This document shows positions 10,640 through 43,499 of a stretch of DNA of 64,000 bases, piece after piece. The stretch spans positions 204,414,001 through 204,478,000 of the forward strand of contig CM097883.1 of the NCBI GenBank assembly GCA_044892505.1, given 5' to 3'. Both the position numbers and the translations under genes were made by a program. This DNA comes from Schmidtea nova (taxonomy: Eukaryota). The stretch's first letter is position 1; each line of letters opens with the position of its first letter. Under the pieces are notes generated by a model, which worked only from the letters and a program-made list of their open reading frames with translations, ran no database searches and was not told where the DNA came from.

Positions 10640-11160
10640 ATTCTATAGTTAATAAATCTAATGCTAATAAATCTTTATTCGCTGATAATTGTTTTTGGGC
10701 ATCCGTATCTCGCAGACCAGTTTAATTCTAGTTTTCTACAAATTGTTGCTGCTGAGATCTTTTTGGTTGGGATAGCCTCAAACCAGTTTATGTTTCGGTC
10801 GATTATTGTCAGTAGATATTTGTGTTTGTTGTTAGGTGGTTATGGATCAATTATGTCTATATGAATTGTTTGGAAGGGTTCTGTTTTAGGGAATTCAATT
10901 TTTGTTGTTATTTTGTTTTAATGGTAGTTTATACATGAATTCACGAATTCTTTGATGTCTTTCCTCATGTTTGACCATACCACTTTTGTGTGCAGAGTTT
11001 GTATGTGACTTTTGTTCTTGGCTGGTATATGTTGTGAAATTGTTTGATGATTTCGATTCTGTGTTCATCAGGTACTATTAGTCTTATGTTGTTTTCTATT
11101 GAGATATCGTGCCAAATTCCATCTATCTCTTTTAGAACTAACGAGTTGAGTTTTGGGAAG
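10640..11160 (-). pseudogene. Ty3/gypsy integrase remnant
   Basis: Manual minus-strand translation with stops/frameshifts: IWHDISIENNIRLIVPDEHRIEIIKQFHN...VVWSNMRKDIKEFVNSC...FQTIHIDII...YLLTIIDRNINWFEAIP...WSARYGCPKTIIS. It aligns motif by motif with the integrase of the intact Pol at 23962-27372. Confidence 0.85.
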
Positions 11161-13959: not shown

Positions 13960-16900
13960 CGGGGCCGGGTGGTGGGTTTTTGCCGCCCTAGGCAAAACGC
14001 AAATTTGCCGCCCTATAGCCTATATGTAAAGTTCATTTTGGATTGTTAAAATCACTGTGCGTTCATCTTTCATGTTTCTCTTAATATTTGTTGTTGTAAT
14101 TATCTTTTCATGGTCAGAGAATGTGTGCGATGTAATTGTTGAAATACTAGCAAACCGTACAGACAATAGTTCAATCAGAAAAGAATGGAATGCGCCTTAT
14201 TTTTATTGAGGCAAATTCCCGAGCAAGTTCGCCGATTTCCACCTTAGAAGCCATTTCTTTCTCAATGGAGAGAATAGCCAAGTCCGATAAACGATCTTCT
14301 GCCATTGTAGATCGCAAGTAATTCTTTATTATTTTCAGTTTTGAGAAGCTGGATTCTCCTGCTGCAACAAATACTGGGAGAGTAAGCATGATGCGCAAAG
14401 CCAGAGACAAATTTGGTAATACACTGCACAGTTGATTAGTACAGATAACTACAAGCAACTGCTTTGGTGTTTTTCTCTCTTGAATCCGACGTTGTAGGCA
14501 TTTTATTTCTTCAAAAAGACGGAGGGCATCAATGTCTTTGTCACTGTCGTCAGTCAGAGCTTTTTCTAATGATCGGCATTTTTCAAGAAGGGTGGCGGAC
14601 TGATAGTCTCCTCCAATACAACTGAGAAACCCAAACACTGTGTGATGAGCATTCAAGAGCGTGAAGCGCTCTTCCAAAGAGTTGATAGCAGCGTCTAACA
14701 CCACGAAGAAAAACTGACACTTGAACGACTGTCTGGGATCTGATATTTGATCATTAGCCGCTTCATACTGAAACATTCGTTTTTTCGTACGAGCCCGAAA
14801 TTGCGTCACAGCAGGAAATGTTGGGTCTATCTCCAGATCTTTTGCTAAGCCTTCTGCCTCTTCAAGAGTTTTGAGAAAGCTGTCGTCAGAGCGATAGTTT
14901 ACGAGATATTGAATGGTTTTATTCAGCTGAGTGACAGCTTCGGACATGTCGACAGATTGAGATTGAAGCAGTTTATTCGCAAAGTTGACCTCGTAAAGGA
15001 TGATATACCAAACGACCACACTAACAACAAATTTGAAGCAACGCAGCTGAAATGCAATTCCTTGAGCATCTGCACGAGTTTGTGCGCCAGTCACTCCAGT
15101 TAGGGTCGTATCTTCGATAATAGAAACAAGGGCATCATAGACTTCTCCAATTTGATAACGTAAAACACGAACGGCATTTACTCTACTTGACCACCTCGTT
15201 TCACTGAGAAGTTTGATAGTTAAACCCGACACATTGTTTTTGAGAACCTTACAGCGATGTGTGGACGCAGAAATAAACACATACACCGCCTGTACGACTC
15301 CAAAACATTTGACAGCTTCTGTGCAGGAATGTGCAGCATCGTTGACGACGAGGTTCAGTGAATGAGCAGTGCAAGGGATATAAAATGCTTGAAGATTTAA
15401 ATCAAGAATTTTCTTCTGCACGCCATTATGCTTTCCTTTCATGTTAGAGCCGTTGTCGTAACCTTGCCCTCTGAGATTAGTCAAAACTAAGCCCATTTCC
15501 TCGATCTTCTTCACAATTAAATTCGTCATTCCAGCTCCAGTTGTTTTAGATGCGACCTCATATTGCAGAAAATGTTCGTGAACAGCAACATTCACAACAC
15601 GTTCTTCTTGAGCTTCACACAAGGACACAAATCGAATCACTAAAGTTATTTGTTCAACATGACTAACGTTTGGTGTACAATCAAAGATTATTGAGAAGTA
15701 TAATGCATTTTTGGCTTCACTAAGAATTTCATCTCTCACCTTTTTTGCCAACAATCCAATGATTTCATTTTGAATATTTTTGCCCGCATAGTGCACATGA
15801 ATTTCCTCACTTTTGATGCGCCGGATGTGTTCTTTCATTACAGGATCAAAGCTTCCTAAGTATTCAACAAATTGAAGAAAGTTACCATTGTTGGGTTTAA
15901 AAAGCTTATCGGACGAACCTCAAAATGCTAAGTTTTGAACTGCGTGTACTCTAATGAGTCCGATGAGTCTTTTCAATACTTGTCTCCTGTGTTCGACTTC
16001 TTGTTTTACGACTCGCTGAATTGGCTGCATCAATAGTATTTTCTGGACGCAAACGAACTTTTAACTCCTTCCATTGCATATAAGTTTTATGTAAGTTGGA
16101 GACACTTCATGACTTGAGAGAATAACGGACATATTTTTCCAATCACAACAACCACTGCTTGTTAATGCCACCGATTCTTTCGTGAAGAGTTTACATGAGA
16201 AACAGAATACGACGTTCTAACTTTTCGAATAAACTAGCCAAGAACGTGTCACACTTTCTCCATTCACAAGATTTCGTTTGTAGTGATGGGAACTAAATTT
16301 CCTTCCTTTATCATCTAGTGGAAATTGTGCGTCCATGATTTGTCATGAACCTCTTTTCACCAAATGAATTCTTAACGCATCGTTGAAGGCGAACTACTGG
16401 GATGGATCCTCAATATCGGCTTCTTGATGGTCGTCTGTAATATAAAAACAATAAAATGATATACAACATTCTACATAGATCATATTATAGGGACCACTTA
16501 CCTTGTGGATGATTAGCAATCTTCTCCTCAACAGTCAAATGGCATTGCGAAGAGAGAGTGTCATTTTTTTGTATGTTCCAAGAATGATAATGGATCAATG
16601 GGTGCTGATGTATCATCTTCTGTGGGTTGTTTTATTTCAGCAAACTATCCTTCATCCGCAATAAGCTTGTTGGATTTTTTGAAAATTGTATTAATTTTAC
16701 GTAACTTGGATATCTCGAGTTCTTGTTTCCTTTTCTTTTCGTCTGCCAAATTCTTGTAACCTGATCCACTTAATCTCTTTCTTCCGTCATTCATGAGATA
16801 CGAAGTATGTAGGTAGTAAATAGTCTACAGACGGTACAAAATGACAGGATGAAGCGAGGTACATTGAACAATTCACGACTGAAAATGTATTATATCTCAC

Positions 16901-20495: not shown

Positions 20496-20898
20496 TAATT
20501 AATATATTCGTCGTTGACTCATACCGTTTCCCCTCTCAAAATATTAATTTTTTCACTTAAATTAATTTTTATTAAGTTTTACTATTTATTTAAGCTAAAA
20601 CTTTTGCATTTGAATTATGCATTTTTATTTGTGCATTTTTGTGCATCCATCTGCAACAATGATGTTTTAAAAAATTGAATTTTTTATGTATTTCGTAATA
20701 TTAATTGGTTTTTTAAGTTGTAAAAAATATAAAAATTTTCAAACTAAAAGATCCAGTTAAATTTCATTTATTCCCATTTGAATAGAAAGTTAGTTTGCAA
20801 CAAATTATTCGTCAACAACAATATCTGATAATGAGGGGGTCCTCAGTAATGCCAACTGGACCCGTCTCATGAATAATGCAACGTTCATAAATTATAAT

Positions 20899-21663
20899 TG
20901 TAGTGGTCCGGAAGGCCGATAACCAAGATTCGTTCAAAGCAGTAAAAGAACATAGCCTGCCTCAAACTTTCACTCTATTCAGTATTATTGAATTTTCAAC
21001 AAGTCATTTTAATGACGAAGAAAAAAATAAACTCCAAAAAAATAACAATCTGAGTTAAAAAAAATAACTGTGGTCAAACTGTAAAACTTTCATTTTTAAT
21101 TTTGGCATTTACATTTATTTTTACATTAATTAACTTTAACTTGGAGTTTGTTTTAATATTCTGGCAGAATTTATATTTTGTTTCTAAAGTTTGAAACGTT
21201 TAACATTGTTTAAAATAAATATTTTCAAAAAGTGGACTACTAGTTTTTGATAATTGAAAATGCGTTATTCTATTGTTAAAATTTTAATTGTTCTACAAAT
21301 TTTAACACTCCATATTTTGCAAATGTGTCACAGTAATATTGTTGGATGTGGTGGTTTCGTTAAAACAGATATCATTGGATTTGCTTATCATAAATTATCA
21401 GCACAATTAATGTTTTCGGACGGAACTCTAAATTATGTGACTGATGTCCTTCCAAATGGAGCGCATTCTATTCCTATATATGATTTCGGTTTCTATGTTA
21501 CCAAAATTATGAGTCCTGACGGTTGGAATATTGAACCAACTGATGGCTACGTTATAAACATTAATAGCCAAGATTCTTGTCCAGATGACTATAATTTTCA
21601 TTTCGCTGGTTTTACCGTACTTGGTAAAGTATCAACAGCTAATATTGAAACAGGTCCACTAAA
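20899..21663 (+). repeat. 5' LTR
   Basis: TGTAGTGG...CCACTAAA, direct repeat of 27590-28354. Confidence 0.95.
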
Positions 21664-24031
21664 AATGGTGTCAGAGGAAAACCAATCTCCAATTCAAGAT
21701 GGAAATCAAACATTTCGTCCCCAAGTCTCACAACATCCAGCAACAATGAATAATTCATTTCAATTAAACTCATCTAATTCTAATAATGCAAGTACGCTTA
21801 GTCAAATTGAAGTCGTTAAGCGAATTGCAGCTGCAATGCAACCACCACCACCTCCGATGCATTTAAGCAATCGACAAAATCAACCGTCAATTCCTATAAT
21901 TCCAACCCCATTGCAAGTAAATCAAGACTCTCAAATTCCATTAGACTGTGCGCAATTAATAAGGATTCCAACCAGTTCACAAGACTCAGCTACTAACATT
22001 CGACAGGCTTTACATTTAATACAACAGAATTTAATCTTACAAAGTGATAAATCCAAGCAAGCTAACAATCATATATCAGATGCTAGCAACTCTATAGCCC
22101 CTAATCAGTCTTTAATCGTCAACAATTCAACGAATAGTAGTCTGTCAGCAATAACAATAAGTTCATCTCCAGTCTCTCCACAGAATCAAAATTCTACTGT
22201 TCTTTCTATGATTAACGTCGACGTTCAAATATTAGAAGAGATAAATCGATCGATTCCTCAGCAGAATCCAAAACCAGTAAATTCAACGCCAGTAAATCCC
22301 AATTTTTCTCTTATTCAAACGGATCCCAAAGTCGCTCAACAATTGACAAATGACTTTCAAAAGCAGTTTCTTTGCACACCGCTAGGTGCTAAGCCACAGG
22401 GATACAATTCAATTGGTCAAACATCGGAAGCAACACAAATCAACATGAAAAATTGCAATAACATCAAATCTATCGTAAATTTTTCACCAGCCCCATCGAA
22501 TATGAACTTAAACACCAACAACGATATCAATAATTCGCTATTAAAAGCTCCATCAAATTCAAAAGTCACAGGAACTCCAATATTAACAGATTTTCTTCTC
22601 TTTTCGGAACAGAAGATCAGCCCCCATTATCGCTGTGGAGTTACGTTAGCATATTTTATTATTATATTAAATTTCTATTATTATATATTATTATTTATAT
22701 CATTATTATTAAAATCATTATTATTAAAATTAACGGAGCCGCCCAATCTTCCGAATTTTAGTCTACGTCGCATATCCTATAGGTTTTTGTCAATATTCGT
22801 AAGGGTTTCCTCCTTCACATTTCACTTTAAACTAGCCCAGGACACGACTATATCAAAACTATCTACATTAATTTGCAAGCGCTTGTCGTACGAGGGACCG
22901 ACATACATATCTTATAATGGCGCAATATTAAGGAATCAGGACTCACTTTTAAGTTCTGACATATGTTCGGATTCTTTGCTGTTCTGTCATGTACCATTGT
23001 ATGGCGGCGCACCATCAAGTATAGACGATGACAACGAATACGACGATAAAAAGCCCAAACCTTTGCCTAAAAAGCAAAGAAATGTTCGAGGCGCTGCTTC
23101 TTCCGACAGTAACTCTAGACAAAATATTAATTGTCCGTTCTTTTTAGATGAGAACCAATCACCATCAACTTGGTTACTCACACTCGAAGCCCTTTTAGAA
23201 AGTTGCGGCGTTACTTCTTCAAGAGATAAATTCTATAGAATATTATCTCTCATCCCACAGGAACATTTAGGCCGCCTTTCTGCCGTTATTCGCCGCACAA
23301 CGCAAAAAACCTTTTTAACCCCTTTTGAGGAGCTCAGCACAGGACTGCTGGATTTATTTAAAGTCCCCAAACAGGAAATATTCTCAAAATATTTCAAAGC
23401 CCAATCTTTAGGAAGTTGTAAGCCGACAGAATTTTTGCAGAAGGCTTTTACAGACCTCGAACAAATGCAAAATGGGACAGCACCCGACCAAAACATGCTA
23501 CGCCAGTTCTTTTTAAGTGTACTTCCGACACACACACAACAGATACTTGCTTTATCGTCTCCGGTAGATATACACGAATTAGCAAAAATGGCGGACAAAA
23601 ATCATGAAATTGTTCCGTTAGGTGGTAAACCAGGCTCATCTGTCAATAGCCTTCCTATCGCAAGCCCGCCGATCCCATCATCAACAGAAAATGCTCTTCT
23701 TTGCGCCATTCGCGACCTTACTGATCGTATTTCGCATTTGGAACGTCATAAATCTCCGTCTCGAAATGCATCACTTTCCAATGCGTTTGACCGAAGACGT
23801 TCCAAATCCCCGGCTTATTCAAACATTTGCTTTTATCATACCAAATATGGGACGAAAGCAAATTGTTGCAACATAGGATGTGGCTGGCGAAACAAAGCAG
23901 CTACCCTAAAAATCATTGATAAGTGCATTTATCACGCACGATTTGGGGATAAAGCAAACAAATGCATCGTAGGTTGCAAATCCTACAATTCCCCACCATC
24001 TTCTCCAAACAACATTCAAAAAAACTTGTAA
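21260..24031 (+). CDS. ORF1: NOMO N-terminal fragment / Q-N-S-P-rich linker / hydrophobic segment / ubiquitin-like domain / Gag. A native start is probably the ATG at 21665.
   Basis: Single open frame, first ATG at 21260. Gag core W..TLEALL...LRQFFLSVLP..TQQILA...ELAKMADK plus two C-x2-H-type knuckles (CFYHTKYGTKANCC, CIYHARFGDKANKC). Confidence 0.88.
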   Translation: MRYSIVKILIVLQILTLHILQMCHSNIVGCGGFVKTDIIGFAYHKLSAQLMFSDGTLNYVTDVLPNGAHSIPIYDFGFYVTKIMSPDGWNIEPTDGYVININSQDSCPDDYNFHFAGFTVLGKVSTANIETGPLKMVSEENQSPIQDGNQTFRPQVSQHPATMNNSFQLNSSNSNNASTLSQIEVVKRIAAAMQPPPPPMHLSNRQNQPSIPIIPTPLQVNQDSQIPLDCAQLIRIPTSSQDSATNIRQALHLIQQNLILQSDKSKQANNHISDASNSIAPNQSLIVNNSTNSSLSAITISSSPVSPQNQNSTVLSMINVDVQILEEINRSIPQQNPKPVNSTPVNPNFSLIQTDPKVAQQLTNDFQKQFLCTPLGAKPQGYNSIGQTSEATQINMKNCNNIKSIVNFSPAPSNMNLNTNNDINNSLLKAPSNSKVTGTPILTDFLLFSEQKISPHYRCGVTLAYFIIILNFYYYILLFISLLLKSLLLKLTEPPNLPNFSLRRISYRFLSIFVRVSSFTFHFKLAQDTTISKLSTLICKRLSYEGPTYISYNGAILRNQDSLLSSDICSDSLLFCHVPLYGGAPSSIDDDNEYDDKKPKPLPKKQRNVRGAASSDSNSRQNINCPFFLDENQSPSTWLLTLEALLESCGVTSSRDKFYRILSLIPQEHLGRLSAVIRRTTQKTFLTPFEELSTGLLDLFKVPKQEIFSKYFKAQSLGSCKPTEFLQKAFTDLEQMQNGTAPDQNMLRQFFLSVLPTHTQQILALSSPVDIHELAKMADKNHEIVPLGGKPGSSVNSLPIASPPIPSSTENALLCAIRDLTDRISHLERHKSPSRNASLSNAFDRRRSKSPAYSNICFYHTKYGTKANCCNIGCGWRNKAATLKIIDKCIYHARFGDKANKCIVGCKSYNSPPSSPNNIQKNL
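21666..21677 (+). promoter_or_regulatory. Primer binding site, probably tRNA-Leu
   Basis: TGGTGTCAGAGG lies 2 nt after the 5' LTR and is complementary to a ...CTGACACCA tRNA-Leu-type 3' end. It overlaps the ATG at 21665. Confidence 0.8.
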
Positions 24032-27000
24032 TGCCATCACTCATTGCGGCTGAAGTTGATGGCAAATTACCTCCTGCACTCGATTTATTTCTAGTGAGAG
24101 CTGAATCCCCTTCTTTCAGCGTTGCTCCGAACTTTTGCAGTACTCTCGATTTTCTTGTTGACACAGGATCCAGCCTCTCCATTCTTCCTTTACAATATGA
24201 ATCTCTTTGCGATGATTCCGTTTATACCTTGAAAGCCGCCAACGGAACCATGGTAAATACACACGGTTCTTTTTCAGCAAATTTCGTTCTTCCTTCTTTA
24301 AATCAATCTTTTATATGGAAGTTCTGTGTCGCTGACGTTATCCATCCCATTCTTGGCTCAGACTTTTTGAGTTCACACAATTTGTTGGTCGATTGTCGTT
24401 CACGCCTTTTGAGAACACATTCGCACACAAATTCGTCTTTAATCATTGACACAAAAAAACTCAACATTTCCGACTCATCTGACGTTTCTGTATCTACTGC
24501 CATTCAACCCATTCATCCAAAGATTGCTACAGACATTTTAAATAAATACACATTTTCACAAACAATGCCTTTACGAAAGCAAGTCTCTGTAACATCTTAC
24601 TGCCATACTATCAACACCACAAACTCTCTTCCGGTACGTTGTAAAGTACGCCCTCTTTCGAACGAAAAACTAGATTTTGTTCGCTCCGAATTCGCTACTT
24701 TGTTGAACGAAGGCATTATAAAAAGATCTAAATCTCCATGGTCTTCACCACTTCATCTCGTACCAAAGAAAGACGGAACTTTCAGACCTTGTGGAGATTA
24801 TCGTCGTTTAAATATGATTACGGTTCACGACTCATATTCTATGCCTTTAGTAAACGACATTTTGTACAGACTTACCGAGGCCAAAATATTTTCAACTATC
24901 GACTTAGTTAAGGCCTATCACCAAATCCCAGTTAAAGAATCTGACGTGGAAAAAACCGCAGTTTTAACACCTATCGGACTTTTTGAGTACGTTTTCATGC
25001 CGTTTGGCCTTAGAAATTCCGCTCAAACCTTTCAAAGACACATCGACCATATTTTAATGGATTTACCATTCGCAATTCCTTATATTGACGATATCCTTAT
25101 TGGTTCTAAGGATGCGGAAACACACAAAAAACATTTAGATGCAGTTCTTTGCGCACTTTCTTCCAATAACCTACAAATTAATTTAGATAAGTGTTTATTT
25201 TTTAAAGAAGAAGTCCGTTTTTTAGGTCACATTATCTCGGGTCAAGGCGTCAGTCCACCATCCGACAGACTAGATACTATATCTAAGTTTCCTCTTCCAC
25301 AAACTGTTACTCAACTTCGGAGTTTTCTGGGAACAGTAAACTATTGCCACCGTTTTATTCCTAAAATTTCAGAAATTCTTTCACCTCTTTCTGGTTACTG
25401 TTCTAAACCAAAGAAATCTATAATTCCTTGGAACGATACTTCGTTGCTCGCTTTTGAGCATGCCAAAACAGCCCTTTCAAACATACAGACTTTGCATTAT
25501 CCACGAGGAGATTTGCCATTACGTTTAACCACAGACGCGTCAAACATAGCAATCGGTGCCGTTTTGCACCAGATAAACGGTTACATCCCAGAGCCACTAG
25601 AATTTTACTCAAAGAAACTTACCTCACCACAACAAAAATATTCAGCTTTCGACCGCGAACTTCTCGCTATTTACCAGTCGGTTAAACATTTTAAGCATTT
25701 ACTCGAGGGCCGTCTTTTTAGCATCCATACAGACCACAAGCCACTTGTTTACTTGTTCTCAATGAAAGACCCTTCTCCGAGACAACAACGCCAGATTAGC
25801 TATATTAGCGAATTTTCTTGCCAAATATACCACATCGCCGGCAGTGATAACATTATAGCTGATTGCCTTTCACGAAATGTAAACGCAATTATCCACTGTC
25901 CTTTATTTTCTATCGACGAACTCCAAAATAATCCTCCAGACGCCATTGATATTTCGAAATTTGGCGACAAACACATAATCAAAGACAAAATTCACTACGA
26001 CTCATCTCTTCCTGGCACTCTTCGCCCAATCTTGAATGACTCCATGAGAAAACTGGCTTTTCTCTCTGTCCACAACACGCACCACCCAGGTTCCTCAGCC
26101 ACTTTTAATCTATTACACACGTGTGTAGTTTGGCCAAACATGAGACATGATGTTAAACTCTGGGTTGCACAATGCATAGGATGCCAACGTTTTAAGATAA
26201 CTAAGCACACTAAACCTCCAATAATTCATTATCCCACTGGCAACCGTTTCGAAAACTTACACATTGACATCGTCGGCCCAGTCCCAAGTGACTGCGGTTT
26301 CTCTTACTTATTAACCATGATCGACCGCAAGACTCGTTGGTTCGAAGTCATTCCTTTACGCACCATTTCTTCTAACACTATCGCAACTTCGCTAATTCAA
26401 AATTGGATTTCACGATATGGAGTTCCCAAGTCGATCATCAGTGATCGCGGAACACAGTTTGAATCTAACTTATTTCAAGCTTTGACCGCTAAACTTGGGA
26501 TACAACATCTTCGTACGACCACATATCATCCACAAACAAACGGGTTAGTCGAACGTTTCCATCGTACTTTAAAAGCTTCTCTTGGCATTCTTTCTGAACA
26601 ACAAGGTTGGACAAAGGTTTTACCTTTCGTATTATTAGGTTGGCGAAATACACCTTCTAGGACTACAGGATCATCACCTGCTCAATTACTTTTCGGTACA
26701 AACACATCGTTACCCGGTCAACTTGTCGACTTTGATAACTCTCCTACTTTGGAAGATCTCGCGATTGCTAGAGACCATTTTTTATCAATCGACACTAATC
26801 CTGAATTCTCTTCCTCGACCACCTATAAACCTTACATTCCAAAAACATTCGAAAATGCATCACACGTCTATATTAGAAATATAACTGATGCAAGTTTAAA
26901 GCCAAGATATTCCGGACCTTACAAGCTCGTCGAGATTAAAGAAAACAACGCGAAAGTGATCGTTAACGACGCTACACAAACATTTAACCTCTGCCGTCTT

Positions 27001-27372
27001 AAACCAGCTTTAGTTTTGCTCGATGATGAACCTTCACCTGACAATCTCTCGACCCAAACCGATATAATCTCGAACTCTCACACAAACGATAATGACCCTA
27101 TCAATTCCACTGAGGACGATCTTTCCAACAACTCACCTTCATACCCGATTGTTCAAACATCAAACGCAGAAAACAAAATGACGGAAAAATCTGAATACAT
27201 ACCGTTTATCCCAGAACCGAATGACGTACTTCGTTTACCACCCATTTTGAGGAAAGCAAAGCAAACACAAAATAAACCAAAGTCCGTCACTTACAACAAA
27301 TGGGTTCGTGTCCGTTCTATTAATCAAAAACCGGATTCACCAACTAGACTAATAAGAATCTATTCAAATTAA
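23962..27372 (+). CDS. pol: Pol (protease-RT-RNase H-integrase), in the -1 frame relative to ORF1
   Basis: FLVDTGSS protease, YIDDILI RT, TTDASNIAIGAVL RNase H, HIDIVGP / SDRGTQF / GLVERFHRTLK integrase, GPY motif; no internal stops. Confidence 0.97.
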   Translation: MHRRLQILQFPTIFSKQHSKKLVMPSLIAAEVDGKLPPALDLFLVRAESPSFSVAPNFCSTLDFLVDTGSSLSILPLQYESLCDDSVYTLKAANGTMVNTHGSFSANFVLPSLNQSFIWKFCVADVIHPILGSDFLSSHNLLVDCRSRLLRTHSHTNSSLIIDTKKLNISDSSDVSVSTAIQPIHPKIATDILNKYTFSQTMPLRKQVSVTSYCHTINTTNSLPVRCKVRPLSNEKLDFVRSEFATLLNEGIIKRSKSPWSSPLHLVPKKDGTFRPCGDYRRLNMITVHDSYSMPLVNDILYRLTEAKIFSTIDLVKAYHQIPVKESDVEKTAVLTPIGLFEYVFMPFGLRNSAQTFQRHIDHILMDLPFAIPYIDDILIGSKDAETHKKHLDAVLCALSSNNLQINLDKCLFFKEEVRFLGHIISGQGVSPPSDRLDTISKFPLPQTVTQLRSFLGTVNYCHRFIPKISEILSPLSGYCSKPKKSIIPWNDTSLLAFEHAKTALSNIQTLHYPRGDLPLRLTTDASNIAIGAVLHQINGYIPEPLEFYSKKLTSPQQKYSAFDRELLAIYQSVKHFKHLLEGRLFSIHTDHKPLVYLFSMKDPSPRQQRQISYISEFSCQIYHIAGSDNIIADCLSRNVNAIIHCPLFSIDELQNNPPDAIDISKFGDKHIIKDKIHYDSSLPGTLRPILNDSMRKLAFLSVHNTHHPGSSATFNLLHTCVVWPNMRHDVKLWVAQCIGCQRFKITKHTKPPIIHYPTGNRFENLHIDIVGPVPSDCGFSYLLTMIDRKTRWFEVIPLRTISSNTIATSLIQNWISRYGVPKSIISDRGTQFESNLFQALTAKLGIQHLRTTTYHPQTNGLVERFHRTLKASLGILSEQQGWTKVLPFVLLGWRNTPSRTTGSSPAQLLFGTNTSLPGQLVDFDNSPTLEDLAIARDHFLSIDTNPEFSSSTTYKPYIPKTFENASHVYIRNITDASLKPRYSGPYKLVEIKENNAKVIVNDATQTFNLCRLKPALVLLDDEPSPDNLSTQTDIISNSHTNDNDPINSTEDDLSNNSPSYPIVQTSNAENKMTEKSEYIPFIPEPNDVLRLPPILRKAKQTQNKPKSVTYNKWVRVRSINQKPDSPTRLIRIYSN
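24019..24025 (+). promoter_or_regulatory. -1 ribosomal frameshift slippery heptamer A AAA AAC
   Basis: Sits in correct ORF1 codon phase one codon before the ORF1 stop; Pol is in the -1 frame. Confidence 0.8.
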
Positions 27373-27589
27373 TTGCACCACTGTCCACCAAGTTCTATTA
27401 GTTTTTTTTTTTTCGGTTTCCTAAATTTCTTTCGCAATTCTTTCTCAGGTTATTCCATGTCATTCACGACTCTTTCCAAATACTTTCTGGACACTACAAA
27501 ATACCATATTATTATATACTAAACTACTATATTACGTATCTACATTATAGTATTTCAAAATGTGCTCCACATCTTCCGATGAGGGCTGA

Positions 27590-28354
27590 TGTAGTGGTCC
27601 GGAAGGCCGATAACCAAGATTCGTTCAAAGCAGTAAAAGAACATAGCCTGCCTCAAACTTTCACTCTATTCAGTATTATTGAATTTTCAACAAGTCATTT
27701 TAATGACGAAGAAAAAAATAAACTCCAAAAAAATAACAATCTGAGTTAAAAAAAATAACTGTGGTCAAACTGTAAAATTTTCATTTTTAATTTTGGCATT
27801 TACATTTATTTTTACATTAATTAACTTTAACTTGGAGTTTGTTTTAATATTCTGGCAGAATTTATATTTTGTTTCTAAAGTTTGAAACGTTTAACATTGT
27901 TTAAAATAAATATTTTCAAAAAGTGGACTACTAGTTTTTGATAATTGAAAATGCGTTATTCTATTGTTAAAATTTTAATTGTTCTACAAATTTTAACACT
28001 CCATATTTTGCAAATGTGTCACAGTAATATTGTTGGATGTGGTGGTTTCGTTAAAACAGATATCATTGGATTTGCTTATCATAAATTATCAGCACAATTA
28101 ATGTTTTCGGACGGAACTCTAAATTATGTGACTGATGTCCTTCCAAATGGAGCGCATTCTATTCCTATATATGATTTCGGTTTCTATGTTACCAAAATTA
28201 TGAGTCCTGACGGTTGGAATATTGAACCAACTGATGGCTACGTTATAAACATTAATAGCCAAGATTCTTGTCCAGATGACTATAATTTTCATTTCGCTGG
28301 TTTTACCGTACTTGGTAAAGTATCAACAGCTAATATTGAAACAGGTCCACTAAA
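27590..28354 (+). repeat. 3' LTR
   Basis: Direct repeat of 20899-21663, preceded by purine-rich GAGGGCTGA and followed by the TSD. Confidence 0.95.
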
Positions 28355-28358
28355 ATAA
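27945..28358 (+). pseudogene. NOMO: Captured NOMO (nodal modulator) N-terminal fragment in the 3' LTR; same copy at 21260-21663
   Basis: Signal-peptide-like MRYSIVKILIVLQILTLHIL, then IVGCGGFVK...GTLNYVTD..PNG...IPIYD.G...P.GW..EP...C...NF.F.GFTV.GKV, which matches the recalled NOMO1 N-terminus. The stop is supplied by the flanking TSD. Confidence 0.85.
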
Positions 28359-29204
28359 TGAACACAGATATCCAAGTTGCGTCAACTCCGTCACTAACGC
28401 AGTCGGTGAATCTATCAAATATAAATTTATTGAAGGTGACAACTAAGAATATATTATGTAACAAATCATGACATAACTATATGAAATTAAAAAGTTAATA
28501 TCTTTTACGGAACTCATTTTATTGATGCCACCTAGCAATTGCATTTGGATAATAATAATTATTATTTAGATAACAATAATTTATTTGCGACCCATTGAAT
28601 AAGTCAAGCATAAATGTGCACAAATTTTCTGTAAACTTTAAACATGGAAATCACACAACATTTTGTAATTATTTACAAATATAATTTGTAGAAATTTATC
28701 AAAATAATAAATTTTTGAATTTTGTAATGCCAATTCCATTCTATTAATGGTAATTTATTTCATTTATGGAAATCAATTGAAAAAATGAAAGTCAATTATT
28801 ATTAAATTTGGATATTTTAATCCCTTTTTATTGAATAATAATATTATTACACTTTTTATTGAATTTTTATCGACTTCATATATATTCCTATTGATCATTT
28901 CTAAATTTTAAAATTATTTAAAATCGAAATTCACAAAACTAGGTAAAAATGAACTTTGAAACATTCTAAATTTTTTATATGAAAAATTTGTTTCTTAATA
29001 TAGAAAAATATCAACGAAACGAATGAAAATAAATAAAAATAATCGAAAAAAATCGTGTTTAGCGACGAAAAAAATTCCAAAAATGGCTCATTTGTCAAAA
29101 TATGGATTTTTGCATTTGAAATATTCGGTTGGCAGCGAGTGAGTCACGGAGAAATCGATAAATTGCATTTTTGAATTTCATTTTCATTAGTTGTCATTTG
29201 CTAA

Positions 29205-29299
29205 CCAATCGCAGCTCTCAATCACAACCAATTGCTGATCAAATATCTGCCAATCAAATCACACGAAAATCAATAAAATTTAATCCTTTTGATCTTGAA
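29205..29299 (+). promoter_or_regulatory. Putative cdc25 promoter: three CCAAT boxes plus a CHR-like CTTGAA
   Basis: CCAAT at 29205, 29228 and 29250; CTTGAA at 29294; mirrored in the inverted copy. Multiple CCAAT plus CHR is typical of animal G2/M genes. Confidence 0.45.
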
Positions 29300-29410
29300 A
29301 GACCCCATGAAAAATACGGCAATTTTAATGAGTTCATCAGTTCAAAGAATTGCAAAATTCAAAACAATTCGGTAGGTTTTATAATCCTTCTGTGACTATA
29401 TTATCGGACT

Positions 29411-30676
29411 ATGAAGATTCAGCAAAATCCGTCAAGATCTGGTGACGTTTCTAACGATAATAATTCTTTGGATTCTGGTTTCGATACTGAGCATAGTCAA
29501 GATGACATTCTCTCCTTCGTGCTGGAAAACAACGAGGAGAATATTCGGTCAAATCTCTCACAGACTTCACAAAGGATTCCAATATTTCAAGTAAAATTGA
29601 CTAATTTTATTCATGATGAAACTTATGTTAATTTATAGATGGATGTATTATCGGACCCAGTAACGGACTGTTCGGATTCCACAGAATATTTACTGCCAGT
29701 CACAACGGAGACCACTCGTCATCTATTTATTCCTCAAATATCCACATCGACATTGGCTAAGCTGATTTCTGGCAATCATATCCTCGATAACCCCGTTGAA
29801 ATATTTGATTGTCGCTACCCTTATGAATATTCCGCTGGCCACATTGTCCATTCGAGAAATGCTTACAATAAGCAAGTGCTCCTTCAAATGTTGTTTCCGA
29901 TATCCGAATCAACAGTCAATCAACATCCAACGGATGTTACATTAAGGAAAACTTTGAAAAGAGATGACACGATTTATATATTCTATTGTGAATACAGCAG
30001 CTACCGGGCCCCTGGATTGTGAGTTCTCATTTATATTGNNNNNNNNNNNNNNNNNNNNNNNNNNNNNNNNNNNNNNNNNNNNNNNNNNNNNNNNNNNNNN
30101 NNNNNNNNNNNNNNNNNNNNNNNNNNNNNNNNNNNNNNNNNNNNNNNNNNNNNNNNNNNNNNNNNNNNNNNNNNNNNNNNNNNNNNNNNNNNNNNNNNNN
30201 NNNNNNNNNNNNNNNNNNNNNNNNNNNNNNNNNNNNNNNNNNNNNNNNNNNNNNNNNNNNNNNNNNNNNNNNNNNNNNNNNNNNNNNNGCATTCGAGAAT
30301 TAGATCGGATAGTAAATGGTTACAATCGAGATTTATTTTTCCCAAATATTTATATTCTCAACGGAGGCTATCGGGAATTTTTCAATAATTATCCTGTAAA
30401 TTTGTATACTTATTTAATTGTTGAATGACGAATTGTATTTAGATATTGTGCTGTCCTCAAGGGTACATGAGCATGGATCTGTTCCTCTGCATTATAGACA
30501 ATAATCGCATGTACACCAAGGACTGTTCAATGCTAGATGAGCAAAATATGAAAAGGAAATACCACAATCAAAATGTAGAATTAACAAACAAATATAAAGT
30601 AGCAATTACCAAATCGTCGAGAATCAGCGACATTCTGTCTTTATTTGCATCGCATCCTAAAATCAGAAACAAATAG
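29411..30676 (+). CDS. cdc25: Cdc25 M-phase inducer phosphatase, copy A (spliced: 29411-29590, 29639-30018, exon 3 emerging from the gap to 30395, 30443-30676)
   Basis: IFDCRYPYEYSAGHI, catalytic CX5R in FYCEYSSYRAP, IRELDR...YILNGGYREFF. GT-AG introns of 48 and 47 nt; intron 2 contains an N gap. Confidence 0.92.
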
Positions 30677-32959
30677 AAAAAAATTCGTATTTTTACCATC
30701 TGAATTGGTCTGTGATATTTCTATGATCTCTATTTTGATCTCATTCTTGATGGAAACATCGAAATTAATTTTTTAATAAACTTTCCTTTTAATAATTTTC
30801 TTCATTAGTCTTTCATTTTTTGATATCTACCCAGAGTCCTGCTCGTGAAATGCTCAGAAGAGGATTTCCATGTCTCGGTAAGGGTTATATTTGTTTTATT
30901 TTGCCGCACATATATGGTTTCGAGACTTTTCCAGCTCCGTGATTCTTATTTTCTATATTAATTGCTCCAGTTATACCTTAATTGCAAGGGTGAATCACAC
31001 AAGAATACGTTTAAATCATTTCAATTCGACATCCAATGTTTCTCCTAACGAGCGTAATTGCTCAAGAATATTTTTAAAATATTAATAATAATATCGAAGA
31101 ACAAGCATTGATATCAGGAATTCCAAAAATGCTTCTTGATTCTTAATTTATTTACTGCACTCTCTTTCAACAGCATGTATATAATTAATTTGAAATACTG
31201 AAAATAAATTTTTAAAATTTTTCAGTCAAAATTTAGCGAAATTGTGACGTAATTTTATGTCAAAACAATAATTTAATATCACTTTATATCAGCAATTTTA
31301 ACGGTGGCAAGGAGATTTTTTAAAGCTGTTGGGGTTATCATTTTTGGTGCAAAAAAAAAGTTACAAGAACGGAAAATATAAAATTTAGCAATTCAAAAAA
31401 GAGCAAAATTAATTTTTAATTTTGCTCTATTTTGAATTGCTAAATTTTATATTTTCCGTAAAAATTAAAAATAAATTCTTTGAGGAGGAAACGGGTATGA
31501 GCGGAAGACAAATTGTGAAACGAAAACGAAATCGAAAATTATAAAAAGATTAATGGGATCCGAGGAAAAGTTTTTTACAAATACAAATTAATTAAGAAAA
31601 TAAATCAATTTAATTAAAAATAATATGAAAATCCCGAGCTATAACAAAAAAGCCTAATCAATTTTTTAATTAAAACCTGGCAATTGATCAACAAAAATAT
31701 TGGGGTCGTGTTTAAATAAGAACGAAATAAAATAAAAAGCACTAAATCTATGTGCAAAAGAACACAAAAAATTTTAAAATTATTAGTTACTAAAATTTAT
31801 TAAAATTTTAAAAAATTTTAAAAAATAAAGATTTAGCTGGGGAAACTGGTATGGGAGAATGCCAAATGATGAGACAAATTCAAATATGGTAATTTAAAAT
31901 TAAAAATGGGCCCCAGAAAGAAAATTTAGAAAAATATTAAAAAATAGAAATTAACTACCTAGTGGAAAGCAAGATCTGTTTAGGAAACAAAATTGTTAAA
32001 ATACTAGGGGAAATTGAAGGATCTAGCAGAAGCATGGGTGAGAAGCGCTTAAACTTTTTAAAAGCCATAACAAAATCAATTAGTAAAAAACCCAGTGAGA
32101 TTAGAGGACCCAAGTGGTAAGGAGAAGCAGGATGAATCACAAACACACTTTAAGACCAAAATGAAGCAAGAAGCGCTGACGAGTAATACAATTAAGTAGG
32201 AGATTTACTCAATTAAGGAAGCAATATAAAAAGAGATGAGTCTTAAATGTTTGCACTAGATTGTTGAAACACGATATTTGAATTGAAAATTTCGATAAAG
32301 ATTGTCTAAAAAGAAAAAGGGACCAAGAATTTGTGTCAACTCAATTGTTTGAGTACCAGATAGGGTGATCTCCCATTGGAACACTTGAAGAGGGCAGATC
32401 CCTGTGTAACTTGTGTAGTGAAATTTGATAATAAAGATTACTGTGTTTGGTTTTTGTTAATTTGTTTCTAAAGAAAAGAAACAAGAAGTCAAGCAGTATC
32501 CAACTTTTTAATAATAACTCAATAAAGATAAGGCCTGGTGGCAGCAGGATGATAATTAGATTAGGTTTCTGCTTAATTTGCATAATTTGCACTCCAAATT
32601 AGAGAGAGAGCCCAATTTTTATTTTGCATTAAAATTTGTATATAAAATCTTTACATTTTTTAAAATTTTATATTTTTTTATTTTAATGTTTATTATAAAT
32701 AAAGTTTTATAAATTATTAATAAATGTTACTTTATGTGAGGCCCGCCAAAAAATTTTAAAATTTAAATTGGCCCATTGATTAAAAAGTTTGCTCACCCCT
32801 GGTTTAAATGAACCTTGCTTTACCAAAATTGTTCTTTCGGAATCTTCTAAATTTATTGGCTACAATGCTGTGGTTAAAGTTTATAGAGCTTAGTCCGTAG
32901 GTGTAGAATTAGTGTCAATGTTAATAGTTTTTTAATTTGGCGGCGGACTTATGCCCGTT

Positions 32960-34354: not shown

Positions 34355-35977
34355 GGACAGAAACAATAAATACGAAATGTAAATTTCATGGTGATCTAAA
34401 AAAAGTATCACTTTCGATTAAATGGGTAAATTCGATTAATAAAGATTTGCCGCCCGCACAAATGTCCGTTTTGTCCGGCACGTAGAAGGGTCACCTAAAT
34501 AGAAATATATTAGTGAACAATGTACTTTTTTTCATTGCGCCCTTCATTTTAAAATGGTTAACCAATTCTGTTTTAAAGCTTATGCTGAATTCCACGAATT
34601 CAAAAAGAATGTTAAATAAAGGAAACTACCAAAAACTATAATTGACATTCTGTTTGATCATATATTTAATACATTCACTCAATTATTTTGCTGAACAAAT
34701 TAAAATTAATAAAATAAATTAAAAATATAAATAAAAATGAGCCAATTAGAGCAGAATATTTTATTAATACAAAAATTAAAACTGTTACTTACTTAATTTT
34801 GTCGCCTATCATTGTTGTTTGGTTAAATTTATTAGTAAAATTTATCCAGGTCAATGCAGCTCGTAATCAGCATCTTCTAATTCATCCTCCTTAAGCCTCT
34901 TTCAAAATCAGCACTCGATATTTGAAAGGTTCCACAAATATCAAGTAAAACTTTTACTTTTAAAGCTTTCTTTGAAAAGAACCAATTAAAGAAAATCATT
35001 GAAAATTATAAATAATATTTTTTAATTTTTCCCGAAAATAATTATTTATATCATTATTTATATCGCTCGTTACTATTTTGCTATTTATGTTAAGGATGAG
35101 ATAATTTATATTTTTGTTGGGTTGTTTATTTTAAGTCAGTTTATTATCTGACTCCTCGTGCTCCCAGAATTGAAAAATCACCAAAACCTAACACAATAAA
35201 TTTTATTGAATTCCACCAATTTACAAATAATAAATAAATAAATCAATCAATCAATACAATTTCCATTTCCCCCTCTATTCTGGTAGGCTTCACGCTTCTT
35301 GACTTGCTAATGCTGGGTTCTGCACTCACTTAGTCCTAGTTACCAAATGCGTGTTTACTGCTCGACAAATATTTGGCTTCACTAAATTTATTTTTATAGT
35401 TTTTCAGTTATGAAAACAACGCAATTAAATTTCCTGAAATGGAAAAACAATGGAATTTTTTCCTGTGTTTTAATTCAATTTTCGGTCTGTAAATCCGGTA
35501 ATCTAATTTGATATCGGGTTTTCCTCTTGCGCGGGTTTTTTATTAGTCTAGGTTTTACATTGACCCAGCCGTCCTAAAAACGTTGCATGTAGCTGGAAAC
35601 CTTTTAATATTAACTGGCATAATGTCACATTGAAATGATTTAAACGTATTCTTGTGTGATTCACCCTTGCAATTATGGAATAACTGGAGCAATTAATATA
35701 GAAAATAAGAATCATGGAGCTGGAAAAGTCTTGAAACCATATATGTGCGGCAAAATAAAACAAATATAACCCATACCGAGACATGGAAATCCTATTCTGA
35801 GCATTTCACGAGCAGGACTCTGGGTAGATATCAAAAAATGAAAGACTAATGAAGAAAATTATTAAAAGGAAAGTTTATTAAAAAATTAATTTCGATGTTT
35901 CCATCGAGAATAAGATCAAAATAGAGATCATAGAAATATCACAGACCAATTCAGATGATAAAAATATGAATATTTTT

Positions 35978-37594
35978 CTATTTGTTTCTGATTTTAGGAT
36001 GCGATGCAAATAAAGTCAGAATGTCGCTAATTCTCGACGATTTGGTAATTGCTACTTTATATTTGTTTGTTAATTCTACATTTTGATTGTGGTATTTCCT
36101 TTTCATATTTTGCTCAACTAGCATTGAACAGTCCTTGGTGTACATGCGATTATTGTCTATAACGCAGAGGAACAGATCCATGCTCATGTACCCTTGAGGA
36201 CAACACAATATCTAAATACAATTTGTCATTCAACAATTAAATAAGTATACAAATTTACAGGATAATTATAGAAAAATTCCCGATAGCCTCCGTTGAGAAT
36301 ATAAATATTTGGGAAAAATAAATCTCGATTGTAACCATTTACTATCCGATCTAATTCTCGAATGCANNNNNNNNNNNNNNNNNNNNNNNNNNNNNNNNNN
36401 NNNNNNNNNNNNNNNNNNNNNNNNNNNNNNNNNNNNNNNNNNNNNNNNNNNNNNNNNNNNNNNNNNNNNNNNNNNNNNNNNNNNNNNNNNNNNNNNNNNN
36501 NNNNNNNNNNNNNNNNNNNNNNNNNNNNNNNNNNNNNNNNNNNNNNNNNNNNNNNNNNNNNNNNNNNNNNNNNNNNNNNNNNNNNNNNNNNNNNNNNNNN
36601 NNNNNNNACCTTTGATCTTTTTTTATTATTATTATCAATAATTCTCATAATGACTATAGATCAAAAATTTTTTTTATAAACAATAACACAATATTTCGGC
36701 ACAGCCTTTATCAAGTGTGTATTTCTAATAATAATAGAAATACACACTTGATAAAAACTGTGCCGAAATATTGTGTTATTGTTTATAAAAAAATTTTTGA
36801 TCTATAGTNNNNNNNNNNNNNNNNNNNNNNNNNNNNNNNNNNNNNNNNNNNNNNNNNNNNNNNNNNNNNNNNNNNNNNNNNNNNNNNNNNNNNNNNNNNN
36901 NNNNNNNNNNNNNNNNNNNNNNNNNNNNNNNNNNNNNNNNNNNNNNNNNNNNNNNNNNNNNNNNTGCAATATAAATGAGAACTCACAATCCAGGGGCCCG
37001 GTAGCTGCTGTATTCACAATAGAATATATAAATCGTGTCATCTCTTTTCAAAGTTTTCCTTAATGTAACATCCGTTGAATGTTGATTGACTGCTGATTCG
37101 GATATGGGAAACAACATTTGAAGGAGCACTTGCTTATTGTAAGCATTTCTCGAATGGACAATGTGGCCAGCGGAATATTCATAAGGGTAGCGACAATCAA
37201 ATATTTCAACGGGGTTATCGAGGATATGATTGCCAGAAATCAGCTTAGCCAATGTCGATGTGGATATTTGAGGAATAAATAGATGACGAGTGGTCTCCGT
37301 TGTGACTGGCAGTAAATATTCTGTGGAATCCGAACAGTCCGTTACTGGGTCCGATAATACATCCATCTATAAATTAACATAAGTTTCATCATGAATAAAA
37401 TTAGTCAATTTTACTTGAAATATTGGAATCCTTTGTGAAGTCTGTGAGAGATTTGACCGAATATTCTCCTCGTTGTTTTCCAGCACGAAGGAGAGAATGT
37501 CATCTTGACTATGCTCAGTATCGAAACCAGAATCCAAAGAATTATTATCGTTAGAAACGTCACCAGATCTTGACGGATTTTGCTGAATCTTCAT
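35978..37594 (-). CDS. cdc25: Cdc25 phosphatase, copy B (inverted, same exon structure)
   Basis: Near-identical reverse complement of copy A, with six amino-acid differences visible. Intron 2 contains gaps and a foldback repeat. Confidence 0.9.
36608..36808. repeat. AT-rich foldback (palindromic) repeat in cdc25-B intron 2
   Basis: Arms ACTATAGATCAAAAA...CACAATATTTCGGCACAG..TTTATCAAGTGTGTA are inverted around a short spacer; same family as 60971-61188 and ~56520-56665. Confidence 0.85.
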
Positions 37595-38911
37595 AGTCCG
37601 ATAATATAGTCACAGAAGGATTATAAAACCTACCGAATTGTTTTGAATTTTGCAATTCTTTGAACTGATGAACTCATTAAAATTGCCGTATTTTTCATGG
37701 GGTCTTTCAAGATCAAAAGGATTAAATTTTATTGATTTTCGTGTGATTTGATTGGCAGATATTTGATCAGCAATTGGTTGTGATTGAGAGCTGCGATTGG
37801 TTAGCAAATGACAACTAATGAAAATGAAATTCAAAAATGCAATTTATCGATTTCTCCGTGACTCACTCGCTGCCAACCGAATATTTCAAATGCAAAAATC
37901 CATATTTTGACAAATGAGCCATTTTTGGAATTTTTTTCGTCGCTAAACACGATTTTTTTCGATTATTTTTATTTATTTTCATTCGTTTCGTTGATATTTT
38001 TCTATATTAAGAAACAAATTTTTCATATAAAAAATTTAGAATGTTTCAAAGTTCATTTTTACCTAGTTTTGTGAATTTCGATTTTAAATAATTTTAAAAT
38101 TTAGAAATGATCAATAGGAATATATATGAAGTCGATAAAAATTCAATAAAAAGTGTAATAATATTATTATTCAATAAAAAGGGATTAAAATATCCAAATT
38201 TAATAATAATTGACTTTCATTTTTTCAATTGATTTCCATAAATGAAATAAATTACCATTAATAGAATGGAATTGGCATTACAAAATTCAAAAATTTATTA
38301 TTTTGATAAATTTCTACAAATTATATTTGTAAATAATTACAAAATGTTGTGTGATTTCCATGTTTAAAGTTTACAGAAAATTTGTGCACATTTATGCTTG
38401 ACTTATTCAATGGGTCGCAAATAAATTATTGTTATCTAAATAATAATTATTATTATCCAAATGCAATTGCTAGGTGGCATCAATAAAATGAGTTCCGTAA
38501 AAGATATTAACTTTTTAATTTCATATAGTTATGTCATGATTTGTTACATAATATATTCTTAGTTGTCACCTTCAATAAATTTATATTTGATAGATTCACC
38601 GACTGCGTTAGTGACGGACTTGACGCAACTTGGATATCTGTGTTCATTATAATTTATGAACGTTGCATTATTCATGAGACTGGTCCAGTTGGCATTACTG
38701 AGGACCCCTCATTATCAGATATTGTTGTTGACGAATAATTTGTTGCAAACTAATTTTCTATTCAAATGGAAATAAATGAAATTTAACTGTATCTTTTAGT
38801 TTGAAATTTTTTATATTATTTTAACAACTTAAAAAACTAATTAACCCATTTCTTCCCAAAATTAAAAATCATGAAGAAATATGCTACTTTGTCATAAATT
38901 TCACTTTAATA

Positions 38912-42269: not shown

Positions 42270-43499
42270 TTATTATTCGAAAAATCAAGGCAAAAAATAT
42301 GTTCTAAAATGTAATATAATTTTATAAAAATTAAATGTCAAGAAATAATGTATTTACAAAGTTTTTACACTGCAGAATACTTTATAAGCACCAAATATTC
42401 ACTTAGAAGTCTTATTTTAAACCGCACAGGTCACAATTTGTCACACAACAAACATGAACTGAGCAACTCCCAACAGATGTATGAATCATTCACTGATGAG
42501 TCATAAGATCAAGATAATAAAGAAAATATGCATCTATGTGCGTTCCACATATATATCACATAGGAATATGAACATAACAGTTAAACTAAATATAATTTAA
42601 TATTTCAAATAACTTATTGAAAAATATTGGAAAAAACGCGATTTCAGTATTATGCTTTTAACGAATTGTTGGAATCATTTTGAAATTATAAACATATAAA
42701 CAGACAGCTAATGAATGCTTTTAACATACATAATAAGTTTTGTATAATAAATTCGTTTTAACTGCATTGTGCGAAGTTAAACTTTGCATTGCGTGTGTGC
42801 AACATTGGGAAGAAATGGGTTAATGTTACGAAATATGTAAATATTCAAGTTTTTAATATATTATTTTTGGAGTTGCACAAAAATGCACAAATAAAAATGC
42901 ATAATTTAAATATAAAAATGTAAATCTTAAAAGTTTAAATTAAGAGAAAAACCTATCAAAAATTAAGTGAAAAATTAATATTTTGTGAGGGGAAACAGTA
43001 TGAGTTAACGCCAAATATATTAATTAAAATTTTATGGGGCTCCAGATAAAAATATTACAAAAATAAGGATTAATTAGCGGTTGGTAGCTGTTCACTTTTA
43101 TAGTTTGCTATAGACAAATGGGATATTTTTAAGACTCAAACCACTTTGTGATAAAAAATGTTTGAAATAAAGTTCGATTCAACGTTTATTCTTTATTACA
43201 AGATTCTTTTTCAAATTCTGTTTCTCTTTGAAAATCACTCGATATAAACAAATCTATTTTCTTTTAAATTGATTATCTAAAATAAATTAATTATCACATT
43301 CCCCTGTGATAAGTACGACGAATCCAACTTGTACTGATCAAGATAGGAAGGCTTCCTTCGATTGCGAGCCAAGCTCGTGTCTTCCTCACTCTCTTCTGGA
43401 TTTCTGATGTCAATCTGATTGTCTTCAAATTCGCATTCGACATCGCTGGATTCGATAGGTTGATTTGGCTACACTCGGATGTCTGCAACATGACGCGGT

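Follow-up and report, generated by a model that had tools for sequence, protein, structure and literature searches.

A ubiquitin module in the Gag reading frame of a Ty3/gypsy retrotransposon

Natural linear fusions of ubiquitin or ubiquitin-like (Ubl) proteins, such as ubiquitin-eL40, ubiquitin-eS31 and FUBI-eS30 (FAU), place a Ub/Ubl domain ending in GG directly upstream of a cargo protein in one ORF, from which the cargo is expected to be released by a deubiquitinase. In the case of FUBI-eS30, cleavage is carried out by USP36 (PMC8354635), and linear Ub-X fusions are in general cleaved by cellular deubiquitinases unless X is Pro. In cytopathic pestiviruses, sporadic recombinants of an RNA virus, a host ubiquitin captured into the polyprotein seems to provide a host-enzyme cleavage site that frees the downstream protein. 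Among retroelements, some non-LTR retrotransposons carry 2A ribosome-skipping peptides at the N-termini of their ORFs (PMC3708506, PMC3894237), so that a short module separates the element's protein from whatever is translated upstream of it, although by co-translational peptide-bond skipping rather than by proteolysis. Elements of the CsRn1 clade of Ty3/gypsy (CsRn1, PwRn1, AgCR, Kabuki-like) are characterized by Gag knuckles of the CX2HX9CX3C (CHCC) type, a PR-RT-RH-IN order and, in some members, gag and pol overlapping in the -1 frame (PMC2582038), but that description does not mention ubiquitin.

We focused our attention on a 64,000-nucleotide stretch of Schmidtea nova DNA (assembly GCA_044892505.1, contig CM097883.1, positions 204,414,001 to 204,478,000), hereafter the window. 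An earlier note, made from the sequence alone, had claimed that a 74-residue Ubl domain with a C-terminal di-Gly is fused directly to the N-terminus of a retrotransposon Gag, and had proposed that a host deubiquitinase rather than the element's own protease may release Gag. The observation was confirmed, as translation of positions 22787-23008 (+) gives exactly these 74 residues, ending in PLYGG (22994-23008), within the ORF 21254-24031 and in frame with Gag. Nevertheless, two details require correction. First, the conserved Gag core, starting at motif FFLD (23138), lies 43 residues after the GG and not straight after it. Second, the module is internal rather than N-terminal: the ORF starts inside the 5' LTR, and the residue numbers 512-585 given in the note therefore count LTR- and leader-encoded residues.

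The element occupies positions 20899-28355 (+) and is intact and young. The 5' LTR (20899-21664) is 766 bp long, starts with TGTAGTGG and ends with CCACTAAA(A), with imperfect terminal inverted repeats, and self-BLAST showed it to be 99.87% identical to the 3' LTR (27590-28355), from which it differs at one base. The target-site duplication ATAAT is found at 20894-20898 and 28355-28359, the first A of the right copy being equally attributable to the last base of the LTR. In addition, an empty paralogous site with a single copy of the duplicated bases was found at 38646-38650 (-), in the other arm of a large inverted repeat, where the sequences 20701-20898 and 28355-30038 adjoin each other. The Pol ORF (23962-27372) has no interruptions and includes a protease DTG motif at 24160, a reverse transcriptase with YIDD at 25081, RNase H, an integrase zinc domain and an integrase core (Pfam RVT_1, 2.9e-32; RT_RNaseH, 1.4e-28; Integrase_H2C2, 3.9e-13; rve, 3.8e-14). 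It lies in the -1 frame relative to gag, and the overlap contains an A AAA AAC heptamer (24019-24025), a candidate -1 frameshift site. The Gag core (23138-24031) shows a weak DUF7041 match and two CHCC knuckles, at 23828-23881 and 23924-23977. Altogether, the PR-RT-RH-IN order and the CHCC motifs uphold the Ty3/gypsy assignment, and the Gag signature is that described for the CsRn1 clade (PMC2582038).

The reading frame is also open upstream of the Ubl domain. The 3' part of the 5' LTR (21260-21664, repeated in the 3' LTR at 27951-28355) encodes, in frame with the leader and Gag, a signal-peptide-like hydrophobic start, with a hydropathy peak at residues 11-15, followed by a NOMO1-like first beta-sandwich (Pfam PF22898, E 6e-14), residues 23-133 aligning to residues 32-144 of human NOMO2 at E 2.9e-18. 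As this repeat holds a NOMO-like ORF, we considered whether it could be host sequence and not an LTR, but this was rejected, since the paralogous arm joins the two flanks with a single copy of the duplicated bases, and the repeat has LTR-type inverted termini followed by the primer-binding site (PBS) of the family. This PBS-like 12-mer, TGGTGTCAGAGG (21666-21677), lies one or two bases after the LTR, is unique in the window, where no tRNA gene was found, and forms with the preceding A an in-frame ATG at 21665; the same 10-mer lies upstream of the Ub/Ubl in 8 sister loci. The leader itself (21665-22786) comprises about 320 residues rich in S, N, Q and P without any Pfam match, followed by a TM-like hydrophobic stretch encoded by AT-rich DNA (about 22631-22744) and a short spacer. 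No stops are present in its 371 codons, against 32 and 21 in the other two frames, and none of 2000 shuffles stayed open. Overall, the frame is open from the PBS to the Ubl in 7 of 9 elements, while the other frames hold 2-32 stops (shuffle shares of 0.037 or less), and it stays open for a further 36-137 codons into the LTR. A gag ORF that starts inside the 5' LTR and reads through the PBS seems also to occur in Ty1 of yeast, of the Ty1/copia group.

On its own, the domain of the window is a weak ubiquitin match, as Pfam PF00240 covers profile positions 1-69 of 72 at E 1e-4, with 22.4 bits against a cut-off of 25.4. Still, the resemblance is more than chance. All five weak PDB sequence hits are Ubl domains, and a three-sequence profile built with two sister elements hits ISG15 at E 4.7e-6, with the GG aligned on the C-terminal GG of ISG15. 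Moreover, two AlphaFold models, although of only moderate confidence (pLDDT about 58-60), predict the strand-strand-helix-strand-strand-short helix-strand order of a beta-grasp, and almost all of the top 50 Foldseek PDB hits for each model are SUMO, ubiquitin, ISG15 or other ubiquitin-fold proteins (probability up to 1.00, best E 6e-4). In contrast, a phmmer search with the domain alone (a 114-residue piece) found nothing among 1.84 billion representatives, the domain being too diverged to find relatives alone, and Pfam on single diverged sister Ubls gave only marginal hits such as UN_NPL4 and Coilin_N.

It was the relatives that settled the question. Protein searches returned three lineages (P0001, P0002 and P0005), and 11 metagenome loci were found in addition (designated by L numbers below), whereas a search for longer (509-1619 aa) relatives of Ubl-Gag, scans of viral contigs and of genome contigs, and exact-sequence look-ups of the window's Gag and Pol found none. 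All 13 related loci that cover this stretch have a ubiquitin or Ubl domain of roughly 76 residues ending in GG, 18-27 residues before FFLD. Four of them, L008, L009, L014 and L005, carry near-canonical ubiquitin at the same place; L008 matches solved ubiquitin at E 3e-32, residues 1-76 on 1-76, with solved ubiquitin-ribosomal fusions among its top hits. Six of 13 family members match PF00240, with a best E of 6e-26. The diverged sister Ubls align to the ubiquitin-like ones with an hhalign probability of 96.6% (E 6.5e-10), and the window aligns to the diverged set at E 1.9e-4 over 76 columns, GG on GG. The comparison of the window's domain with the ubiquitin-like sister profile alone is not significant (E 0.098); the link needs the intermediates. 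Given the four near-canonical copies at the same place, the domain is therefore ubiquitin-derived, not merely similar. Gag identity does not track Ubl identity (Spearman 0.16, p 0.39), and one ancient capture with uneven decay could not be told from repeated re-capture of host ubiquitin. The distribution is currently narrow, and two more distant DUF7041 Gags in the database lack the module.

In a 13-sequence alignment, only the two glycines are invariant, and Arg at P5 is at least 90% conserved. The residue after GG is A, T, S or N and never P, being Ala in the window, which suits deubiquitinase cleavage. In addition, dN/dS of the core is 0.14-0.34, indicating purifying selection on the domain, although no close relative of the window's element was found in which constraint in its own lineage could be assessed, its Gag being only 31-36% identical to nearly all the sister Gags. 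Ubiquitin's own Met is kept only in L008. In the window there is no ATG at the domain start, the nearest in-frame ATG being at 22502, 95 codons upstream, and in L006 and L009 the only upstream in-frame ATGs lie in the LTR. In this respect the module resembles an internal unit of polyubiquitin more than the ribosomal fusions, from which it also differs in that the cargo is a retrotransposon Gag, the leader is long and variable, and the domain evolves fast instead of being nearly invariant. No NPGP-type motif, as in 2A-type modules, is visible in the ORF.

Based on these results, the 74 residues represent a strongly diverged descendant of a host ubiquitin built into the gag reading frame of a sub-lineage of CsRn1-clade Ty3/gypsy retrotransposons. 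The primary product would consist of a variable leader peptide, the Ub/Ubl domain ending in GG, and a linker (43 residues in the window, 23009-23137, acidic then basic) followed by Gag. We propose that host enzymes trimming natural linear ubiquitin fusions cut after GG, which would discard the arbitrary leader and release Gag with a fixed N-terminus, without need for the element's own aspartic protease at this step. This is the best-supported mechanism and we regard it as probable, in support of the earlier note, but the cleavage, the enzyme and the site of translation start are inferred, in the absence of any cleavage data. It should also be considered that the window's copy is the most diverged: its tail is PLYGG, whereas 12 of 13 aligned sequences have Arg at P5, and the position matching the hydrophobic-patch Ile of ubiquitin is not hydrophobic. 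A general deubiquitinase may therefore no longer recognize it.

Two alternatives are unlikely, to a similar extent. The Ub/Ubl could stay attached as a permanent N-terminal domain of Gag, recruiting host ubiquitin-binding machinery for trafficking, budding-like steps or proteasome shuttles; in fact, the domain is under purifying selection and always adjoins Gag, and many cellular proteins keep uncleaved UBL domains, parkin and ubiquilin being among the weak hits. However, the only invariant positions are the terminal GG, which integral UBLs usually lack, Pro never follows it, and the rest of the surface diverges so far that BLASTP no longer aligns several sister copies. Alternatively, cleavage at or near GG could be carried out by the element's own aspartic protease or a specialized Ubl protease, the fold serving mainly as a folding or solubility aid for Gag. 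The element does encode a protease, and the diverged copies, including the window's, depart from the RLRGG-type tail of the ubiquitin-like copies. Yet retroelement aspartic proteases are not known to require GG, and an LxGG-type tail, a signature of the ubiquitin-family proteases, is kept in 9 of the 13 aligned sequences (the others have V or I at that position) and aligns with the ISG15 tail. Even less likely, the domain may be a decaying relic in the window's lineage, with Gag made from another start or working with the extension attached, in line with its divergence, the loss of Arg at P5 and the lack of in-frame ATGs between 22502 and the GG. Nevertheless, the frame is open for 925 codons in AT-rich DNA, there is no ATG between the GG and well into Gag, so that Gag cannot be made without translating the domain, GG and the fold signals are retained, and the element is young and uninterrupted. 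Finally, conjugation of the freed leader-Ubl product to targets as a modifier, suggested by the free C-terminal GG that cleavage would expose and by the ISG15 hits, is very improbable, as modifiers do not carry long variable N-terminal extensions, leaders differ completely between elements, and the surface needed for E1 recognition is not conserved.

More speculatively, and only as a possibility, ubiquitin may serve these elements as a "leader eraser": with the gag ORF starting in the LTR and translated straight through U5, the PBS and the packaging leader, that RNA region could evolve for its cis-acting roles while the resulting junk peptide is cut off by host deubiquitinases. The freed leader could also acquire functions of its own. 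In the window's element, where it has picked up a host NOMO signal peptide and first luminal domain, followed by the S/N/Q/P-rich stretch and the TM-like segment, it would anchor the precursor in the ER membrane with Ubl-Gag on the cytosolic face, where Gag could be released.

Ubiquitin fusions as such are well known, but no published report of this arrangement was found in the literature library searched, which does not exclude that it is recorded, e.g., in curated repeat databases. Retroviruses and LTR retrotransposons are thought to mature Gag with their own aspartic protease. If the proposed cleavage occurs, a whole lineage has outsourced the definition of the Gag N-terminus to the host ubiquitin system, using a captured host gene. 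As a fixed, inherited feature of a whole group of LTR retrotransposons, the module would be a natural, heritable counterpart of the ubiquitin-fusion trick seen in ribosomal protein genes and in sporadic pestivirus recombinants. Moreover, it gives a graded natural series, from about 75% ubiquitin identity to barely recognizable, showing which features of ubiquitin are needed when the only requirement is to be cut after GG, and it points to translation through the LTR, PBS and leader as a regular feature of these elements.

Window 22787-23008 (+) translates to the 74 residues that the earlier note had read there, ending in PLYGG. These residues lie in an open frame of 925 codons, at 21254-24031, which is overlapped in the -1 frame by a frame of 1136 codons, at 23962-27372. 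Self-comparison of the window revealed a 766-bp direct repeat at 20899-21664 and 27590-28355, the two copies of which differ at one base. The repeat starts TGTAGTGG, ends CCACTAAA(A), and is flanked by ATAAT on both sides. The window also holds a large inverted repeat (20701-20898 plus 28355-31032 versus 35622-38844), with arms 95-99.8% identical and interrupted by N runs at 30039-30288, 36367-36607 and 36809-36964; the repeat could be either a real palindromic duplication or an assembly artefact. The retrotransposon sits in one arm only, while in the other arm (about 38646-38650, minus strand) the two flanks adjoin with a single ATAAT, which makes it an empty site. The unit 20899-28355 is therefore one LTR retrotransposon insertion of 7457 bp.

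Analysis of the coding content showed that Pol carries a DTG protease motif, RT with YIDD, RNase H, the integrase zinc domain and the integrase core, in that order. Gag has two CX2HX9CX3C knuckles, the CHCC signature that defines the CsRn1 clade of Ty3/gypsy (PMC2582038). Moreover, the 70-base gag-pol overlap contains a classic A AAA AAC heptamer at 24019-24025 (+), just before the gag stop, representing a candidate -1 frameshift site. No stops or frameshifts were counted inside gag or pol of this copy. Other mobile elements are also present in the window. A second, unrelated LTR-type element at 43146-46927 (-) is flanked by 153-nt direct repeats, and its ORFs carry CCHC zinc knuckles, DUF7047, RT and integrase matches, spread over several frames. 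In addition, mobile-element remains were observed at 14171-15838 (-), 61387-63848 (-), 40569-41186 (-) and 10678-10995 (-), namely two hAT-type transposase ORF sets (DUF4371 plus the hAT dimerisation domain), a piggyBac-like transposase fragment, and a gypsy integrase fragment 48% identical to the integrase of this element.

We then focused on whether the segment is a ubiquitin-like domain. Taken on its own, the evidence is suggestive but not decisive. The Pfam profile PF00240 matches over profile positions 1-69 of 72, but at 22.4 bits against a cut-off of 25.4, and all five weak PDB sequence hits are Ubl domains. AlphaFold predicts the ubiquitin order of secondary-structure elements, although at a pLDDT near 58-60, and Foldseek returned almost only SUMO, ubiquitin and ISG15. 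However, a phmmer search with the domain alone found nothing in 1.84 billion representatives.

The question was settled by relatives. Protein searches with Ubl+Gag found three lineages from ENA assemblies (P0001/P0002, with cluster mates P0006/P0007, and P0005), whose contigs carry gag followed by pol, and a metagenome scan added 11 loci. In every locus that covers the stretch (13 loci, as sister locus L007 is cut by its contig end), the Gag frame holds a domain of roughly 76 residues ending in GG, located 18-27 residues before the conserved Gag start FFLD, while the window has 43 residues there. Four sister loci (L008, L009, L014 and L005) carry near-canonical ubiquitin; L008 aligns residue 1-76 on 1-76 with solved ubiquitin at E 3e-32, and by our count from that alignment it is about 75% identical. 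The others are progressively diverged. Nevertheless, profile comparison links the diverged sisters to the ubiquitin-like ones (probability 96.6%, E 6.5e-10), and the window to the diverged sisters (E 1.9e-4 over 76 columns, GG on GG). Moreover, a profile of the window plus two sisters hits ISG15 at E 4.7e-6, with the tails aligned. Not every sister copy is intact: L003 is an old copy, with LTRs about 81% identical over the part that still aligns, 6 in-frame stops in the leader interval and an interrupted gag; L014 has 4 in-frame stops in the leader interval; and L005 and L012 have interrupted gag frames, with L012 showing 8 stops in the stretch examined. The other loci are open over the parts recovered.

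Regarding conservation, the only invariant columns in the 13-sequence alignment are the two glycines, while an Arg at P5 and one Leu reach 90%. The residue following GG is A, T, S or N, and never P. Between sister pairs, the 76-codon core has a dN/dS of 0.14-0.34; the domain is therefore translated and constrained, yet far less so than cellular ubiquitin. Several sister copies with Gag 63-75% identical no longer align in the Ubl by BLASTP and, among sister loci L004-L014, the elements' ubiquitin is only 50-67% identical between copies whose Gag is 62-82% identical; the ubiquitin module often evolves faster than the capsid protein it precedes. This pattern fits a requirement for fold plus tail plus GG, and fits poorly with a role in binding ubiquitin receptors.

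The position of the module differs from that described in the earlier note, which had described a ubiquitin-like domain fused directly to the N-terminus of Gag, as the module is in fact internal. A conserved primer-binding-site-like 10-mer lies next to the LTR in the window (21666) and upstream of the Ub/Ubl in 8 sister loci. In 7 of 9 elements, the Ub-Gag frame has no stop between this site and the domain, while the other two frames have 2-32 stops; shuffled sequence stays open in 0.037 or less of trials, mostly below 0.001. The frame stays open for a further 36-137 codons into the LTR, and in L006 and L009 the only upstream in-frame ATGs are in the LTR. Ubiquitin's own Met survives only in L008. 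In the window, there are eleven in-frame ATGs from 21260 to 22502, and none between 22502 and well inside Gag. The precursor is therefore inferred to be leader peptide, then Ub/Ubl-GG, then linker and Gag. Leaders differ completely between elements and match no family. However, a very AT-rich stretch always precedes the Ub/Ubl (22640-22730 (+) in the window, about 480-640 in L001 and about 680-1085 in L003), conserved in position but not in sequence.

The leader of the window's element is peculiar. Its LTR part (21260-21664 (+), repeated in the 3' LTR at 27951-28355 (+)) is an intact ORF segment encoding a hydrophobic, signal-peptide-like start plus a NOMO1-like first beta-sandwich (PF22898 at E 6e-14), and in the 5' LTR it is in frame with leader-Ubl-Gag. 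Residues 23-133 align to human NOMO2 residues 32-144 at E 2.9e-18, and the segment looks like a captured 5' piece of a host gene. About 320 residues rich in S, N, Q and P follow, and then, just before the Ubl, a TM-like hydrophobic stretch, into which the AT-rich DNA of the window translates.

Full-text searches of the literature available to us found no report of a ubiquitin or Ubl module in the Gag of an LTR retrotransposon, and the paper on the CsRn1 clade never mentions ubiquitin (PMC2582038). The closest functional parallel among mobile elements is the 2A peptide at the N-termini of non-LTR ORFs (PMC3708506). The principle of a ubiquitin fusion cut by host enzymes is known, but its fixed use by a retrotransposon lineage is not, as far as we could find.

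Several alternatives for the role of the module were weighed. That the domain remains uncleaved, or that cleavage is carried out by the element's own protease or by a special Ubl protease, are both considered unlikely, and a relic with no present role is more doubtful still. A conjugatable modifier is very improbable. The best reading is that host deubiquitinases cleave after GG, an inference that rests on the established behaviour of linear ubiquitin fusions and on the FUBI-eS30 precedent (PMC8354635). For the window's copy the inference is weaker, as its tail is PLYGG and its surface is much changed; nevertheless, the copy is young and uninterrupted, and Gag cannot be translated without the domain. 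Such cleavage would remove the leader and give Gag a fixed N-terminus. Moreover, the gag reading frame is kept open from inside the 5' LTR through the primer-binding site and leader in the window and in sister loci L001, L005, L006, L009, L010 and L013, which suggests that translation through these cis-acting regions is normal for this group.
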